Shown here: piece after piece, positions 19,242-29,124 of the stretch
How positions within the stretch are numbered: position 1 is the stretch's first letter
Layout of the letters: each line of letters opens with the position of its first letter
Sequence record: NC_034628.1
DNA length: 35,035 nt
Strand: one strand, 5' to 3'
Position numbers and translations under genes: made by a program
Notes under the pieces: model-generated
What the model saw: only the letters and a program-made list of their open reading frames with translations
What the model was told of the DNA's origin: nothing
Databases searched by the model: none

Positions 19242-20054
19242 ATGAGTGTCAATTTATGTCATTATGAAGCAGAAAATATAAGCTATAAAGATTTAGAAAA
19301 TTTACAAGGTATGATATATTATGAAATTAAATACGACGGAACTCATATCTGTTTAAAATATGAAAATTCATTAAAGATAAACACTAGAAAAGACATTCCA
19401 CATGATAAAGGATTTCAAAATTTATTTTATCAAGTTCCAAATATTGAGGAAGTTATAAAATATATAAAACAAAATCCACAATATATTATCCATGGAGAAC
19501 TTATACATAAAAAGACATCAGCACTACAAATCCATACAAATGAAATTCCGGAATTTATCATATATGATGTCTTTGACAAAGAAGATAATAGATATTTAAA
19601 TCCAACTGAAGTTGATAGCGAAATTTATTATTGGTATCCTGAAATTTGTTTAGATTTAGATGATTTGATTGATATTATAACTAAAGAAAAACTTGAGGGT
19701 TTAGTAGCTAAAATTTACAATTCACAAACTATAAACTGTGAAGAAGGAAAGAATTTCAATTTATGCGTTTACAAATATAAGCCATATTTTTCAACTTTAG
19801 GAGTAATATTCAAACCAATTAAAAGAGAAATTGATATTAGACAATTATCATTTTTATTAGGAGAAATTGATAATGACTTAAAGAATAATAAAGATGATTG
19901 GTACGAAAATCATCAAGATCTTTACAAGTTCTTTATCGAAAATAAAGATAAAATAATACAGATACTACAAAACGAAAACTTTATATCACAAATTGAGAAA
20001 GAAACACATTTAGACATTAAGAAAATAAAAGAATACATTATAAACTTCAAATGA
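19242..20054 (+). CDS. ATP-dependent ligase-family nucleotidyltransferase (RNA-ligase-like)
   Basis: Motifs I EIKYDG, Ia NTRK, III HGEL, IIIa FIIYDV, IV EGLVAK, V YKYK; helical C-terminus; GTC promoter at 19219. Confidence 0.8.
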   Translation: MSVNLCHYEAENISYKDLENLQGMIYYEIKYDGTHICLKYENSLKINTRKDIPHDKGFQNLFYQVPNIEEVIKYIKQNPQYIIHGELIHKKTSALQIHTNEIPEFIIYDVFDKEDNRYLNPTEVDSEIYYWYPEICLDLDDLIDIITKEKLEGLVAKIYNSQTINCEEGKNFNLCVYKYKPYFSTLGVIFKPIKREIDIRQLSFLLGEIDNDLKNNKDDWYENHQDLYKFFIENKDKIIQILQNENFISQIEKETHLDIKKIKEYIINFK

Positions 20055-21894: not shown

Positions 21895-23553
21895 ATGTCT
21901 TCAACTTACTGTATTCAATTAACACAAGATCTTTATTTGATTGCTATAACTACAGCAAATCCTGTAAATTTTACTAATTTACAATTCTCATTATCTGTAA
22001 ATTCTTTAGTTATATTTCTATTCTCAAAATATCCATTTAATTTTGGTTATGACCATGCTTTTTGCGTAAATCAAGATGAATTTGGTTTCGCTCAAGTCGG
22101 GACAACCTTCAATATAGATTTAACAAATTATCAAGGATATTATATGTTAATTTTAATTTATCCTGAAGGAATTAATTTAACTAGTGTTGGAAGTTGTGAT
22201 ATTGTTCCAAATTTAACTATGACTTTTCAAAATACAACAATTTCGCCAATTGAAAGTGAAACAATAATTAATAATTTTGATGGACAATTTGAAACAGATT
22301 TTTGTGCATGTTATCAAGGTCAAAGTCATACAATAGGAACTACATGTTCAAATTCAAATTATGTTCCAGCAATTTCATTAAATAATCTAAATAACCAATT
22401 AGTAATTATAACTTGTCAAGCATTTTATCCTACAAGTAATACAACTGTAGAATTTGTAACGCCGACCACATGTCCTTATTTTGGTGCATATTTAACAGCA
22501 GAAATAATATTTATTGGAAATCAACAAGTCATAGATTTTCTAAATAGTAACAATATATCATATTCTACTATTTCTTCTACTACATGTCAAGCATTTTCAA
22601 GTATATCGCCATGCGAATTACCTTGCAGATCAGTTTACCAAATTTCACAATTATTATCTCCGCCGCTTAAATATTCATTGATTACCTCAAAATTGTGGAA
22701 TGAAATAGTTAATGATTTATATTTAGCTTACACCATATTTAAATATATTAATTATTTATCTCAATTTCCATATATACAAAATATATATCATGCAATTTCA
22801 GATTTCTACAATTTCTATGAAAACTTTCAACCTTACGTATTTAAACCACTTATTCATGCTAGAAAAGGACTTCCTTTGACAGCTGATTATTTCAATTCTT
22901 TAATAGATACAATTATAGAATTAGCAAATTTTGCTAATATACAATTACGACAAGGAATTTCTCATGTCCAGCCTGACCAAATCGTAAAATCTTTACAATT
23001 CGATAATATAATATATAATGTAAATCAACTTCTAACTTTTAATTATAATCAATACTTTTTACTTAGTTGTTATGGGAATGAATTTAATAATTTATTGAGT
23101 TCAATAACTACATTCCTAAATGTCTTAATTTCGAATCCTATGATCAATATCACAATTCCAAATAATGTCTATATTAAAAACTTCCTAATTTATAATAATT
23201 TTAACACTATTACTATTTATGGGACAATTGCTAACCTTGTAATGAATTTAAATTCTGGAACTATACAATTACAAGACTTTTCATCTATAAGTTTTCTCGT
23301 TTTACAAAATAATTCAGGAATAATAGAACTTAATAATGAATCCAATATACATAATTTATCAATTAATCAAAATCCCGGAACTATTAATATCAACAATAAT
23401 TCAACTGTAAATACAATACAAATTCAAAATAATAGTGGAATAATTAATATCAATGATAATGCAATAATTGAAAATCTAATTTGTAGTCAAAATATTGGAA
23501 CTGTAAATATTTCATCGGATGCGATAGTTATAAATAATCAGTGCAGTTCATAG
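21895..23553 (+). CDS. Probable virion protein (ORF562/564 type) with C-terminal 20-aa beta-solenoid repeats
   Basis: Five N(S/P/I)G(T/I)(I/V) repeats of 20 aa at 23251-23550; Cys-rich N-terminal half. Confidence 0.75.
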   Translation: MSSTYCIQLTQDLYLIAITTANPVNFTNLQFSLSVNSLVIFLFSKYPFNFGYDHAFCVNQDEFGFAQVGTTFNIDLTNYQGYYMLILIYPEGINLTSVGSCDIVPNLTMTFQNTTISPIESETIINNFDGQFETDFCACYQGQSHTIGTTCSNSNYVPAISLNNLNNQLVIITCQAFYPTSNTTVEFVTPTTCPYFGAYLTAEIIFIGNQQVIDFLNSNNISYSTISSTTCQAFSSISPCELPCRSVYQISQLLSPPLKYSLITSKLWNEIVNDLYLAYTIFKYINYLSQFPYIQNIYHAISDFYNFYENFQPYVFKPLIHARKGLPLTADYFNSLIDTIIELANFANIQLRQGISHVQPDQIVKSLQFDNIIYNVNQLLTFNYNQYFLLSCYGNEFNNLLSSITTFLNVLISNPMINITIPNNVYIKNFLIYNNFNTITIYGTIANLVMNLNSGTIQLQDFSSISFLVLQNNSGIIELNNESNIHNLSINQNPGTININNNSTVNTIQIQNNSGIININDNAIIENLICSQNIGTVNISSDAIVINNQCSS

Positions 23554-24030
23554 TTTACAAAATACAAATTCTCTATTATCATCAGTTATGAAAGTTAAAA
23601 TTGTTCCATATAATTTTTTCATTAACTCAAACCTATTTTCTGTCCAATCATGTATTGCTATACAATATTGTTTATATTTCTGTAATTGAGAAACATCTAA
23701 ATTCTTTTCACAATCTTCACAATCCATTATAAAAACATCAGAATTTGGGTATTCTTTACCAGTCCATTCCCCATTTATCTCAACTTTATCACAAATTTGA
23801 AATTCTTTACAAACTTTTTCTTTGAATAATTGGTTCAGCTTTTCCTCTTTCTCATAGCCTACAATTTTTTTAGCACCTTTTAGCAAAAAATACAAAGCTG
23901 AACTTCCGCAATCATTACCAATAATTGTAATTGTCTTATCTTTCACATCTAATTTTCCATATACTAAATCAAATTCATGCCAATAACAACATTCCATTTT
24001 ACAGAAATAATCTTTATAATTAAAACTCAC
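23548..24030 (-). CDS. SAM-dependent methyltransferase
   Basis: IIGNDCGSSALYFLLKGAKKIVGYE motif I plus acidic end of beta-2; matches the rudiviral ORF158 type. Confidence 0.8.
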   Translation of the reverse strand: MSFNYKDYFCKMECCYWHEFDLVYGKLDVKDKTITIIGNDCGSSALYFLLKGAKKIVGYEKEEKLNQLFKEKVCKEFQICDKVEINGEWTGKEYPNSDVFIMDCEDCEKNLDVSQLQKYKQYCIAIHDWTENRFELMKKLYGTILTFITDDNREFVFCKL

Positions 24031-25183: not shown

Positions 25184-25789
25184 ATGAAAATCTTTACTTT
25201 TGCAGGATATACAAAACATTTAGAAGAATTAGATTTTGATTATGTTGTAGTTGATAGGACATTTAATGATATAACTCCCCAGTTAATTGAGAAATACTCA
25301 AATAAGATAAACTGGAATGAGACAAATAGTGATATAAGATGGATCAGAATTGCTAAACAATTGCTAAAAATTTTAGATATAGCAAAAGAACAAGATGATG
25401 ATATATTTGCAATCATAGATAGTGATTTAATAGTTCCAAAATTACGTGAAATAGACCCTTTAAATAGAATTCTCACGCTTTGCTATTGGCTTTATTATGA
25501 TTGGGCAAATGAAATAAGACCTTTCTGTTCAGGAACAAATTACATTTTCAGGAAAAATCAAATTTCAAATTTAGAAATTATATTAAATACTTATTTGGAA
25601 AAAGAATATTACAAAGAAATTCCAATAGATATTTTCATTCATGACCATATTCTACATATAAATATATTAAAATTAGGAACTATACATTATGTTAAAACTC
25701 CTGAAGGAGAGAAAAAAATGGAATTTAAATTTGAAGATATTCCCCAAATTGTAAAGCATATTCCAGAATTTGTTTTAATATCTTGGTGA
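25184..25789 (+). CDS. GT-A-like glycosyltransferase
   Basis: DxD motif IIDSDL after VVVD; CSGTNYIF loop; GTC promoter at 25162. Confidence 0.65.
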   Translation: MKIFTFAGYTKHLEELDFDYVVVDRTFNDITPQLIEKYSNKINWNETNSDIRWIRIAKQLLKILDIAKEQDDDIFAIIDSDLIVPKLREIDPLNRILTLCYWLYYDWANEIRPFCSGTNYIFRKNQISNLEIILNTYLEKEYYKEIPIDIFIHDHILHINILKLGTIHYVKTPEGEKKMEFKFEDIPQIVKHIPEFVLISW

Positions 25790-25904
25790 GGACAAAAATG
25801 AAGTTCTTTAATTCAAAATTAAGACCGAAACAGTCCAAATTAAAAGTTAAAGAAATTAAAATGTCATTTTTTAATTTTTGAACTAAGGACGTGGTGAATA
25901 TAAA

Positions 25905-26969
25905 TTGGAAAAACCAATTTATTACGTTTATCCTCAACATCATGATGTTAGTTTCAAATTTGTAGCTAAAGAACATATAAAAATGTTGAGAGAAAAATAT
26001 ACAGTTTATGAAATTCCAGCTTTATCATTTTATCAATTTACTCCTTTCAGATACCCAATTTCAATTATTCACCCATTTTTTTATTCTATGTGGCACTGGG
26101 GAAAAGTAGAGTTTTCATTTTTTGAACAATATAGATCTAAAGTTAGTCAAATTATTGGAGTTGAAGTAGCTGACAGTGATAGAATTTCAGAAAAATTTAT
26201 AGATTATGCAAATAATTATGCAGATAGACTAATTGGAAATTCAGAATGGACTGTAAACGCTTTTAAAAATTCTGGACTAAAAATTCCAATTTATAAAGTT
26301 GTACATAATTTTAATGAGAGATTATTGGCAAAAGATAATGAGTTAAAAATTGATGAACAAGTTAAATATATTGAAAAAGTTAAAAATGAGAAGAAAATTA
26401 AGCTAATAATGATTTCGCTATGGCATTCTGATTTTAGAAAAGGTGCCGATTTATTCCATGCAATAGCTAGACAACTTCAGAAAGAAAGAGATGATATTTA
26501 TTTCCTAGTAAAAAGTGGAGGGCCTAGGACAGATTTCCAAGATTTGAGAATGTTTAATTTCACGGGAAATACAGATTTTGACAATATCGTGAAGATGTAT
26601 AGAATTTCAGACTTATATCTTTTGACTTCTCGTGGTGGCAGTTTCGAGTTAAACGGTCTTGAGGCTTTTGTGTCAAAAATTCCGACAATCGCCACAAAAG
26701 GCGGTGCATGGGAAGAATATTTTCCATCTCAACTGAAAGATTTACTAGTTGATTCTTGTAGATTTCCAGACGTTTTATGGAATAATCCAATTCATATTGG
26801 TCAAGGAGTAGAAATGTGTACAAATGAGGCAATAGAAAAAATATTAGAAGTTCTGGACAATTTAGACAATTACAAAGCAAAAATTGAAGAAAATTATAAT
26901 TTTTGGTTAGAAAATTTCAGCTATAACGCCGTAAAAAAGCAACTGTTTAACACATTAGAAAAATCTTAA
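25905..26969 (+). CDS. GT-B fold glycosyltransferase
   Basis: RKGAD and SRGGSFELNGLEAFVSKIPTIAT (E-x7-E variant); TTG start with GGTGA RBS. Confidence 0.88.
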   Translation: MEKPIYYVYPQHHDVSFKFVAKEHIKMLREKYTVYEIPALSFYQFTPFRYPISIIHPFFYSMWHWGKVEFSFFEQYRSKVSQIIGVEVADSDRISEKFIDYANNYADRLIGNSEWTVNAFKNSGLKIPIYKVVHNFNERLLAKDNELKIDEQVKYIEKVKNEKKIKLIMISLWHSDFRKGADLFHAIARQLQKERDDIYFLVKSGGPRTDFQDLRMFNFTGNTDFDNIVKMYRISDLYLLTSRGGSFELNGLEAFVSKIPTIATKGGAWEEYFPSQLKDLLVDSCRFPDVLWNNPIHIGQGVEMCTNEAIEKILEVLDNLDNYKAKIEENYNFWLENFSYNAVKKQLFNTLEKS

Positions 26970-26995
26970 ATTGGTCATAAAATCGGAACTATAAT

Positions 26996-28192
26996 ATGGG
27001 ATTTCAAAGAAAAAGTTCAGGAATTATAAAAAGCTTTAGTTCATTAGACATTTTTTCAATTAATTTGTTATATATGGGAATTTTAAGCGGAATAAGTTAT
27101 CCATTATTTGTCTCTGAAATGATGAAAAATGTAAACTTATTATTTGCAGTTTTAATAGGTGCAATTTTTGAAATTCCGCTTTTAGTAATGTATTACATTT
27201 TGACTAAAAAAATTCCGTTAAACGGTGGCGATTATGCATATATTCGCTCAACATTTTCTCCAAAATTTTACACAATTTTCGGAATCTCATTATGGTTAAT
27301 TTACATATTTTCAGCACCAGTTCTAACAGATTTAGTACTTATGAATTTCAATATTCCAATATTTGAGAAATTTCTAATTTCAGAACTACTATTTGCAACT
27401 GCATTACTCAGCGTTAGCAAAAAAACAATTTATGCTTATATAGTAGACGGAATTGCAATTCTACAAATACTTGTATCATTAATTTTGCCAATTTCAAGTT
27501 TTCATTTTGAGATACAGAATTTTACAATATCGAATACTTTACTTTCAGCTTTACTATTTGATTTATCTATGTTTCTATTTTTAAATGCAATTAGTTATAT
27601 AGCTGGAGAGATAAAAAACATAAGCAAAAATGCGAAAATCGGATATTTTGCAAGTTATTTAGTAGTTACTGTATTAGCAGTATTAGACAGTTATTCAAAT
27701 TTAAATATATTATTTCTGTTAATGCCAATATGGTTTATGAGTTATATTTTTGTCACTTCCATGATACAAAGTAGACTAATTCAAAATTTAGCATTTGATA
27801 AAATTTTACCTGAAAAATTTGCAAAAATAACTCCTAACGCACTTCTATTAATCTTTGTCGCTGATACAATTGCAAATATCTTAGAAAATCTTCTAAACTT
27901 TTCAATTTCATTTGGATTTGATGGCTTATTATTTATTTTCTGGAACTTTATAATTGTAAGTTTTGCATTTCTAAAATTAACAAATAATAAACTGTTATTT
28001 TCAATAGTAATGATTAGTCTAATTTTACAGATCTTCATATTTTTCTATCTAGGAATGCAAAATCAAATATTCTATAATTTCGTAATTGAGGGAAATATCA
28101 TATATGCAATATTGAGAATTGTAATAATGCCGATCATTGGAGGAATTATGTATTTAATAAGAAGAAAAGTTATAAACGCTGAGTTAAAATGA
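26996..28192 (+). CDS. APC-superfamily (amino acid permease-like) transporter
   Basis: About 11-12 hydrophobic segments; N-terminal F.RKSSG..KS.S..D; P.NGGDYAYI motif; F......GE.K motif. Confidence 0.82.
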   Translation: MGFQRKSSGIIKSFSSLDIFSINLLYMGILSGISYPLFVSEMMKNVNLLFAVLIGAIFEIPLLVMYYILTKKIPLNGGDYAYIRSTFSPKFYTIFGISLWLIYIFSAPVLTDLVLMNFNIPIFEKFLISELLFATALLSVSKKTIYAYIVDGIAILQILVSLILPISSFHFEIQNFTISNTLLSALLFDLSMFLFLNAISYIAGEIKNISKNAKIGYFASYLVVTVLAVLDSYSNLNILFLLMPIWFMSYIFVTSMIQSRLIQNLAFDKILPEKFAKITPNALLLIFVADTIANILENLLNFSISFGFDGLLFIFWNFIIVSFAFLKLTNNKLLFSIVMISLILQIFIFFYLGMQNQIFYNFVIEGNIIYAILRIVIMPIIGGIMYLIRRKVINAELK

Positions 28193-29124
28193 AATTGGTA
28201 TTTGGCGTTAATACTTCTACAAGTTATTTTTTTAAAACTAATTTTCCAGTTCTAATTAATCAGTTAAGATTTAAGAAAAAAACATGGAAAAATGAAACAT
28301 GGGTCGATAGTGGCGGATTTCAAATTATAATGCATAATCTAAAAATTTCTGTAAATGATGTCTTACAAAAGTATAAAAGTGTTAATGCTTATGCTTTCTT
28401 TTCGCTGGACATACCAAGTATTTTTTCACCTCTTAACAAAAAAAATTTCGAATATTTTGAGTATCTATATACGAAACTCGAGTATATAGAAAAAATTATA
28501 CCTGTGATACATATTTATCCACTTCAAGATGTAGACGAAGCTATAGATTTTTATAAACAATACTCTTACTATTTCGCAATTGGTGGAATTATGACTTCCA
28601 GCAAAATGAAAGTTTTAATTTATACATTTCCATGGATTTATTATATAAGAAAAAAAGTTCCATATCTACATATTTTAGGCATGTCAGGCCCATATTTTTT
28701 ACAAATTTTTAATAATATGCAAAGCATGGATACCGCAATTTGTTCAACAATTTCAGCGTTTAAAGAAATAATTTGGTTTAATGGATCTAGAAGATATATT
28801 GGAAATATGAAAACAAAAAGGGAAAGATATAAAATTACAAAAGACGAAAAAGAACAACTTTTTAAATTTTTAGACAAACATAACTTTCCATTTGAATATA
28901 ACTTAAACGATAATAAAATTCTAGAACTTATAAACGCATATATATTATTATATAACAATTGGAAAATTAAGAATAAATATACAGAATATTCAGAAAAACT
29001 TAAGAGAATGGGAATGGATAGTTTAACAAGTGAGTTAATTAGAAATTATAAATTTGCTAATGAAATATTGAAAGAGAAAAAGAATAAAAAGAAAAAAGAA
29101 GATGAATTAGAACTTGAGATATAG
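28189..29124 (+). CDS. tRNA-guanine transglycosylase (TGT/DpdA)-like TIM-barrel protein
   Basis: DSGGFQ, SLDIP, AIGG, HILG and MDT motifs; no CxCxxC Zn site seen; ATGA overlap with the transporter. Confidence 0.8.
   Translation: MKLVFGVNTSTSYFFKTNFPVLINQLRFKKKTWKNETWVDSGGFQIIMHNLKISVNDVLQKYKSVNAYAFFSLDIPSIFSPLNKKNFEYFEYLYTKLEYIEKIIPVIHIYPLQDVDEAIDFYKQYSYYFAIGGIMTSSKMKVLIYTFPWIYYIRKKVPYLHILGMSGPYFLQIFNNMQSMDTAICSTISAFKEIIWFNGSRRYIGNMKTKRERYKITKDEKEQLFKFLDKHNFPFEYNLNDNKILELINAYILLYNNWKIKNKYTEYSEKLKRMGMDSLTSELIRNYKFANEILKEKKNKKKKEDELELEI

Follow-up and report, generated by a model that had tools for sequence, protein, structure and literature searches.

A permease gene and a DpdA-like gene form a two-gene accessory unit in the rudivirus SIRV4

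The archaeal virus SIRV4 carries four co-oriented genes within 3.9 kb, at positions 25184 to 29124 of the 35,035-nucleotide stretch of DNA analysed here (the window). A first-pass annotation, made from the letters alone, had grouped them as one possible nucleic-acid modification module: two glycosyltransferase (GT) genes (ORF41 and ORF42), a transporter gene (ORF43) and a gene resembling tRNA-guanine transglycosylase, TGT (ORF44). The genuine unit is smaller. The permease and the DpdA-like gene constitute a two-gene rudiviral accessory unit, and the glycosyltransferase genes belong to a module of their own. ORF44 is a stripped-down TGT-fold enzyme that has kept the two catalytic aspartates and the base-binding aspartate, and its sequence profile places it nearer to the DpdA-type proteins of viruses than to arcTGT. 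The locus was 100 % identical to KY744231.1 / NC_034628.1 (record of 35,035 bp, archaeal virus SIRV4) at identical coordinates, and all four open reading frames (ORFs) were confirmed on the + strand. The features of the pair are:

26996..28192, + strand: ORF43, 398 amino acids, APC-fold permease (RefSeq: aminoacid permease), its gene translationally coupled to ORF44
28189..29124, + strand: ORF44 (YP_009362962.1), 311 amino acids, minimal TGT-superfamily protein of the DpdA type (RefSeq: queuine tRNA-ribosyltransferase)
28189..28192, + strand: ATGA overlap of the ORF43 stop and the ORF44 start, read directly from the sequence

Sequence searches with ORF44 gave nothing in Pfam, NCBIfam and PADLOC, nor in the PDB by phmmer and profile hmmsearch. 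The TGT model PF01702 was not matched at E values up to 10, and one of 13 relatives reached E 0.0067. ORF44 matched phrog_887. The relation to TGT is visible only to fold and profile-profile methods. An AlphaFold2 model built on 13 relatives (predicted local distance difference test, pLDDT, 77; predicted template modelling score 0.78; the first 36 N-terminal residues poor) presented the (beta/alpha)8 fold of TGT. VIA superposed the model on human QTRT1 (6h45) at Z 18.0 and on P. horikoshii arcTGT (1j2b) at Z 17.5, with some 240-250 residues aligned at root-mean-square deviations of 3.1-3.4, and all Foldseek matches in the PDB listed down to E 0.001 were TGT family members. The motifs DSGGFQ at residue 40, SLDIP at 72 and SMDTA at 179 contain D40, D74 and D181, all invariant across the 13 family members. 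In hhalign comparisons with canonical arcTGT drawn from four Sulfolobales genomes (89 % probability, E 2e-6) these residues aligned with D85, D120 and D243 in TDSGAYQ, LDVP and SFDSA, which we take to be the active-site positions long established for TGT. The alignment ended at residue 189, ahead of the CxCxxC...H zinc motif of arcTGT. ORF44 has a single cysteine (C185) and no CxCxxC motif, and the family has no invariant cysteine. Beyond the barrel the model shows only a helical tail with a lysine-rich end, and neither a PUA domain nor a C-terminal tRNA-binding domain. Motifs, profile alignment and model thus confirmed the initial description of a TGT-like protein with catalytic-type aspartate motifs (DSGGFQ, LD, MDT) that lacks a zinc site and PUA. 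ORF44 is very probably a base-exchange enzyme of the TGT fold. With arcTGT (1j2b/1iq8) it shares the barrel and the aligned active-site aspartates; arcTGT is, however, larger (about 500 amino acids in Sulfolobales, 576-577 in the P. horikoshii chains) and has the zinc site, the C-terminal domains and the PUA that are missing from the 311 residues of ORF44.

The affiliation to the viral DpdA group results from longer and more probable profile alignments. ORF44 aligned by hhalign to vir519_50 of a Methanofastidiosa caudovirus with 97 % probability (E 1.5e-10) and to gp6, the DpdA of Streptococcus virus MS1, with 94 % (E 1.5e-7, residues 35-266), in comparison to the 89 % and the shorter alignment for arcTGT. 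The protein vir519_50 obtained 75 bits on the Pfam DpdA model PF23859 and only 18.5 bits on TGT. In the BFVD, most of the named matches that followed the SBRV1 orthologue were phage proteins of DpdA type or annotated as TGT (R5C, nt-1, phiST). Fold and profile-profile results thus support placing ORF44 in the TGT superfamily as a minimal enzyme of the kind known as DpdA in viruses, an idea that is not new. Bautista et al. (2017), who isolated SIRV4-11, counted a tRNA-guanine transglycosylase gene as one of the 30 core genes of SIRVs (PMC5454432). Hutinet et al. (2019) reported DpdA in '12 members of the Ligamenvirales and 2 of the Bicaudaviridae', and their Supplementary Data 1 places YP_009362962 of NC_034628 SIRV4 in the DpdA column without any other pathway gene, as "DpdA-only" (PMC6884629). 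The DpdA reading of this exact protein is already published, as a bioinformatic assignment.

Known DpdA proteins differ in how closely they resemble ORF44. Viral DpdA of the DpdA1 type, from Dp-1 and MS1, have about 300 amino acids, a TGT barrel, three aspartates and no CxCxxC motif, and ORF44 is the same in all these points. It differs in obtaining no score on PF23859, in a virus without preQ0 synthesis genes and in a crenarchaeal host. Bacterial DpdA (PDB 7ui4) shares the TGT-fold barrel and the same proposed chemistry, the exchange of guanine for preQ0 in DNA. It comprises about 410 amino acids with insertions and a conserved CXCX2CX22H zinc site, and depends on the ATPase DpdB (PMC10164549). 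ORF44 has neither the insertions nor this zinc site. The absent zinc site separates the ORF44 group from bacterial DpdA and not from the small viral DpdA, because MS1 gp6, also of 311 amino acids, lacks CxCxxC as well; STSV2_15 and the homologues in SRV and SBRV1 are likewise without the motif. The annotation of SIRV4 includes no DpdB-like product, although no search with a DpdB model was made.

ORF43 had been proposed to be an APC transporter, and its modelled fold agrees with this. The Atlas model superimposed with a TM-score of 0.87 over 391 residues on a Thermoproteota 'APC family transporter' cluster, while the Pfam match to AA_permease_2 (19 bits) stayed under the cut-off of 27. The protein has about 11 hydrophobic segments and matches phrog_8289; its cellular homologues have about 490 amino acids and are 35-40 % identical. 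In all SIRVs the permease and the TGT-like gene are adjacent, in the order permease then TGT. A metagenomic rudivirus-like contig (L020) presents the TGT-like gene first, with overlapping stop and start, and in the Stygiolobus rod-shaped virus SRV (L005:3953-6074) the TGT-like ORF294 and the permease ORF419 are convergent and overlap. The coupling of a transporter gene to the TGT-like gene is thus supported by adjacency in three arrangements and by the ATGA overlap, which was confirmed at 28189-28192. A TTAAAT hexamer lies 25-30 nt upstream of the ORF43 ATG, and the pair may have its own promoter. The pair can be lost: genes gp10-gp14 of SIRV2, including the TGT-like gp13 and the permease gp14, disappeared spontaneously in SIRV2MII, which propagates like the wild type in the CRISPR-null S. 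islandicus LAL14/1 (Mayo-Munoz et al. 2018, PMC6315595). Dispensability marks the pair as accessory and fits a role in host interaction or anti-defence. The same study states that homologues of gp13-gp14 are absent in ARV and SRV (PMC6315595), yet SRV carries both genes.

The closest parallel to this arrangement is found in Streptococcus virus MS1. Its genes follow the order QueC-QueD-QueE-FolE, gp5 (a transporter of the Vut_1/YhhQ family, 142.6 bits on PF02592) and gp6 (DpdA). As in ORF43/ORF44, the transporter gene is located directly upstream of the dpdA gene and joined to it by ATGA. The transporter differs, being Vut_1/YhhQ in MS1 and of the APC fold in SIRV4. ORF43 had no match to PF02592 in Pfam and is not a YhhQ homologue, so any such role would have arisen by analogy, not descent. 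The MS1 set of QueC-QueD-QueE-FolE, transporter and DpdA genes resembles that listed for Dp-1. The DNA of Dp-1 contains dPreQ1 at 1.7 % of G, and its DpdA is listed alongside preQ0-synthesis genes (PMC6884629).

SIRV4 itself offers no biosynthetic source of a 7-deazaguanine base. The window contained no match to QueC, QueD or DUF5591, and the ArcS/DUF5591 partner was absent by tblastn and hidden Markov model searches. Host genomes have the capacity: QueC (about 465-510 amino acids) occurred in 47 of 47 Sulfolobaceae species genomes and a full-length arcTGT (PF01702, about 250 bits) in 44 of them. For S. islandicus, FolE, QueD, QueE, Gat-QueC and ArcTGT are recorded (Hutinet 2019, Supplementary Table 2, PMC6884629). 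The earlier remark that a virus without preQ0 synthesis genes would need supply by the host is thus supported, and a host supply is plausible since Sulfolobaceae carry QueC and arcTGT. According to Cui et al. (2023) the STSV2 host S. tengchongensis encodes no protein of the Q/G+ pathway (PMC10516641), a statement to be set beside the QueC in 47 and the arcTGT in 44 of the Sulfolobaceae genomes searched. About 2 kb from its TGT-like gene, SBRV1 carries ORF23-270 (L004:1107-1919), a gene similar to PAPS reductase, a PP-loop ATPase of the superfamily to which QueC belongs; a search for a counterpart in SIRV4 gave none.

From these observations a mechanism can be proposed in which ORF44 would work like phage DpdA. 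After replication, it would excise some guanines from the double-stranded DNA of the virus and replace them with a 7-deazaguanine, either preQ0 itself or a closely derived base. The inserted base would mask the viral DNA from host nucleases. It would be drawn from the archaeosine pathway of the host, the virus making none, and might also enter from outside the cell via ORF43, which is the weakest step in the proposal. ORF43 is a candidate importer of the base; that it actually supplies it is possible and rather doubtful. As a complete explanation, a DpdA-like unit of ORF43 and ORF44 using host or imported base, with the glycosyltransferase module apart, appears to us about evenly balanced between right and wrong.

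Several observations weigh against this explanation. The DpdA model PF23859 matched neither ORF44 nor any other part of the window at E values up to 10. ORF44 is devoid of the zinc site conserved in bacterial DpdA. Its best matches among solved structures are tRNA enzymes, and the bacterial DpdA 7ui4 attained only rank 42 in Foldseek. The permease is retained in SSRV1 and ARV2 without a TGT-like gene, in SBRV1 the two genes lie 5 kb apart, and the nearest cellular homologues of the permease show no linkage to the TGT-like gene of cells. No APC-family transporter was met that carries 7-deazapurines, though no search was aimed at this question. Loss of the pair gave no phenotype, hence no specific function is demonstrated. 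In the literature searched, no paper tied rudiviruses to DpdA or deazaguanines in its main text, and no measurement of modified bases in rudiviral DNA was found. STSV2 is the one relative for which measurements exist, and there the modification level is very low and the base unexplained: its DNA contains dCDG at 0.04 % of G, and it encodes a 'DpdA' (STSV2_15) and an 'ArcS2' (STSV2_16, DUF5591) (Cui et al. 2023, PMC10516641).

Part of this evidence favours another account, in which the preQ0 pool of the host alone supplies ORF44, a DpdA-type DNA transglycosylase, and ORF43 is an unrelated auxiliary protein, e.g., for the uptake of amino acids or polyamines, that merely shares the transcript. 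The solitary permeases of SSRV1 and ARV2 and the separated genes of SBRV1 agree with it. So does the affiliation of ORF43 with generic amino-acid/APC permeases, its nearest relatives both in structure and in sequence, and with QueC in all Sulfolobaceae genomes searched an import is not required. Yet the adjacency outlasts three changes of gene order, the genes are coupled by ATGA, a bona fide DpdA phage has the same transporter-DpdA layout, and both genes were lost together in SIRV2MII, though perhaps only by position. We regard an unrelated permease as the most credible of the alternatives, albeit rather unlikely. In the Hoswirudiviruses SSRV1 and ARV2 (L047:4001-5254, L048:4001-5254) the APC-type permease adjoins a block of methyltransferase, ORF41-like and glycosyltransferase genes and a TFB-like gene; a TGT-like gene was not detectable. 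The SSRV1 gene ORF30-270, next to the permease, was considered as a cryptic TGT-like gene and rejected at an hhalign probability of 0.2 %.

In another alternative ORF44 acts on RNA. As a viral tRNA-guanine transglycosylase, it would re-tune or sabotage the tRNA modification of the host during infection. The tRNA enzymes among the closest solved structures, the database name 'queuine tRNA-ribosyltransferase' with its annotation history (PMC5454432) and the tiny modification level of STSV2 DNA, which could originate from a side reaction, are in favour of RNA. A tRNA role is less likely because ORF44 has no RNA-binding extension, neither PUA nor C-terminal tRNA-binding domain, because no tRNA gene is annotated in SIRV4, and because the host owns an arcTGT. 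Profile comparison also ties ORF44 more strongly, and over a longer stretch, to phage DpdA-type proteins, and phage DpdA failed to complement an E. coli tgt mutant (PMC6884629). DNA appears somewhat more probable than not as the target of ORF44, and the viral RNA enzyme quite improbable.

The ORF44 family is not restricted to viruses. Besides the canonical arcTGT, 30 of the 47 Sulfolobaceae species genomes contained a single chromosomal copy. Of 29 cellular loci examined, 28 had a stand-alone gene for DUF5591, the catalytic core of ArcS, either adjacent to the TGT-like gene or no more than about 4 kb away; the DUF5591 product was 50-69 % identical to STSV2_16. Seventeen of these loci combined, with small gaps or overlaps, genes for the TGT-like protein (about 295 amino acids), DUF5591 (about 180), a HerA-type ATPase (about 535), a protein of about 1010 amino acids without family match and a protein of about 222 amino acids. 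An example of this operon is:

L010:6001-12730: TGT-like/DUF5591/HerA operon in a metagenome-assembled genome of Acidianus hospitalis; the same in L011-L013, L023, L024, L028, L030-L037, L040 and L042

Three further loci (L014, L039, L041) had the order DUF5591, TGT-like gene, NurA. No description of the TGT-like/DUF5591/HerA operon was found in the literature searched, and DUF5591 was found only in Cui et al. 2023 (PMC10516641). A maximum-likelihood tree separated a rudiviral clade from the cellular clade with support of 91/99. Wherever a protein of the viral clade could be assigned to a genome or contig, it was permease-associated. The outgroups stood on very long branches, so that the tree gives no root and no direction of transfer for the rudiviral clade. 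STSV2_15 is 36 % identical to ORF44 over 277 residues with the same motifs, and STSV2 infects a host of the same order as SIRV4. These homologous DpdA proteins differ in their company: STSV2_15 nests inside the cellular Sulfolobaceae clade and is paired with DUF5591, while the SIRV4 protein stands in the rudiviral clade and is paired with a permease.

The recurrent DUF5591 neighbour raises the question whether an ArcS-like enzyme has been split in two and ORF44 is a viral copy of one half, working with the stand-alone DUF5591 of the host and exchanging no base on its own. Canonical ArcS begins with a TGT-like domain (PMC10516641), and in the 28 cellular loci, as in STSV2, the DUF5591 protein nearby has the ArcS motif PC-x3-KPY-x2-S-x2-H. 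But all three active-site aspartates of TGT are invariant in the family, the rudiviral clade is never accompanied by DUF5591 and has the permease instead, and 17 of the 47 Sulfolobaceae genomes had no match to the cellular TGT-like family, DUF5591 itself not having been surveyed across all 47. A half enzyme is therefore very unlikely. The link to a HerA-type ATPase recalls the need of bacterial DpdA for DpdB and suggests, by analogy, a DNA-directed host system. Taken together, the operon of Sulfolobaceae might be an archaeal counterpart of Dpd that marks host DNA with a 7-deazaguanine and attacks unmarked DNA. Rudiviruses would answer with their own DpdA-like enzyme and an APC-type base importer, a new class of 7-deazapurine transporter, and STSVs would have copied the DpdA/ArcS pair of the host. 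We consider this joint scenario speculative and unlikely to hold in full.

Sequences similar to SIRV were also present in assemblies labelled Streptomyces gamaensis, Planomonospora alba JCM 9373 (a 31.9-kb contig), Paenochrobactrum glaciei JCM 15115 and Nocardioides koreensis JCM 16022. Their TGT-like gene was 66-75 % identical to ORF44, and its NCBI name reads 'MULTISPECIES ... [Bacteria]'. These sequences are almost certainly a contamination with rudivirus DNA.

The remaining genes of the locus, and a methyltransferase gene upstream on the other strand, are:

25184..25789, + strand: ORF41, 201 amino acids, GT-A-like nucleotide-diphospho-sugar-transferase fold (RefSeq: hypothetical)
25905..26969, + strand: ORF42, 354 amino acids, GT-B (GT4) glycosyltransferase (RefSeq: glycosyltransferase)
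23548..24030, - strand: ORF39, S-adenosylmethionine (SAM)-dependent methyltransferase according to RefSeq

ORF42 had been assigned to GT-B, and two Pfam matches above the cut-off confirmed a GT-B/GT4 glycosyltransferase (PF13692, 35.9 bits with a cut-off of 27; PF00534, 32.7 bits with a cut-off of 26.4). For ORF41, termed GT-A in the same annotation, the result was mixed. The AlphaFold2 model (pLDDT 87) has a nucleotide-diphospho-sugar-transferase fold and the motif D79-S-D81 is invariant, but the fold is common to sugar nucleotidyltransferases as well: in Foldseek, KdsB and IspD ranked first, mixed with the GT-A enzymes KfiA, SpsA and alpha-3GalT, and the Pfam GT2 model was matched only at E 0.053. 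Judged by the model together with the invariant motif, ORF41 is likely, though not proven, to be a GT-A enzyme. ORF39 had no match in Pfam. A gap of 115 nt (25790-25904) precedes ORF42, whose annotated start is a TTG at 25905; the true start codon is uncertain.

Distribution and gene order separate these genes from the permease/DpdA-like pair. Homologues of ORF41 were found in every rudiviral genus, including ARV1, ARV3, MRV1 and SMRV1, four viruses in which no TGT-like or permease match was obtained. In SSRV1, which has no TGT-like gene, the methyltransferase MT156, the ORF41 homologue and GT343 form one co-directional block, with identities of 58 % between ORF39 and MT156, 54 % for the ORF41 homologue and 59 % between ORF42 and GT343. 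The ORF41 homologue of SIRV2 is located at 27.8 kb, the permease (gp14) and the TGT-like gene (gp13) at 6.4-8.6 kb, and in SIRV1, SIRV2, SRV and SBRV1 the ORF41/ORF42 homologues are 15-21 kb away from the TGT-like gene, the distance in SIRV1 and SIRV2 being about 20 kb. Only in the Yellowstone lineage do ORF41 and ORF42 stand next to the permease/TGT pair. Universal occurrence, the SSRV1 block and the distance in these four viruses define the glycosyltransferase pair with the methyltransferase as an independent, universal rudiviral module, to which ORF39 would belong by synteny. Following the usual inference, this module most likely glycosylates proteins. The idea of a four-gene nucleic-acid modification module was thus not supported, and neither was a decoration of the inserted base by the glycosyltransferases or the methyltransferase, given the SSRV1 block without a TGT-like gene and the separation in SIRV2. 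A better fit is the fallback in the first-pass annotation, in which the glycosyltransferases have another task, for example glycosylating the capsid. A single hypermodification pathway formed by all these genes, with glycosylation or methylation following the insertion of the base, has in its favour the co-orientation and adjacency in SIRV4 and other Yellowstone SIRVs and a gap of only 26 nt between ORF42 and ORF43, but is hardly credible in view of the universal ORF41/ORF42 homologues, present also in four viruses that gave no TGT-like or permease match, the 15-21 kb separation, the SSRV1 block in which they stand with the methyltransferase alone, and the hexamer ahead of ORF43 that hints at a separate promoter.

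While the gene and its DpdA assignment were already known, the boundary of the module, a permease with a DpdA-like gene and without glycosyltransferases, is a useful addition, as are the absence of the zinc site from the ORF44 family as a whole and the clean split into a permease-linked viral clade and a cellular clade linked to the ArcS core and HerA. If rudiviral DNA carries 7-deazaguanines, the well-studied SIRV model system has a level of DNA chemistry that had gone unrecognised, with consequences for restriction, CRISPR targeting and the packaging of the A-form genome. ORF43 would then be the first importer outside YhhQ tied to a 7-deazaguanine pathway.

A scan with sigma-70 promoter and terminator models gave background level only; these models are not applicable to an archaeal virus. 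Public sequencing runs contained only partial matches, in hot-spring DNA metagenomes; no RNA run was among them, hence there is no expression evidence. Among the other genes of the window, ORF36 (19242-20054, + strand), located between structural genes, matched the Pfam families RNA_ligase (PF09414, E 1.5e-9) and DNA_ligase_A_M.

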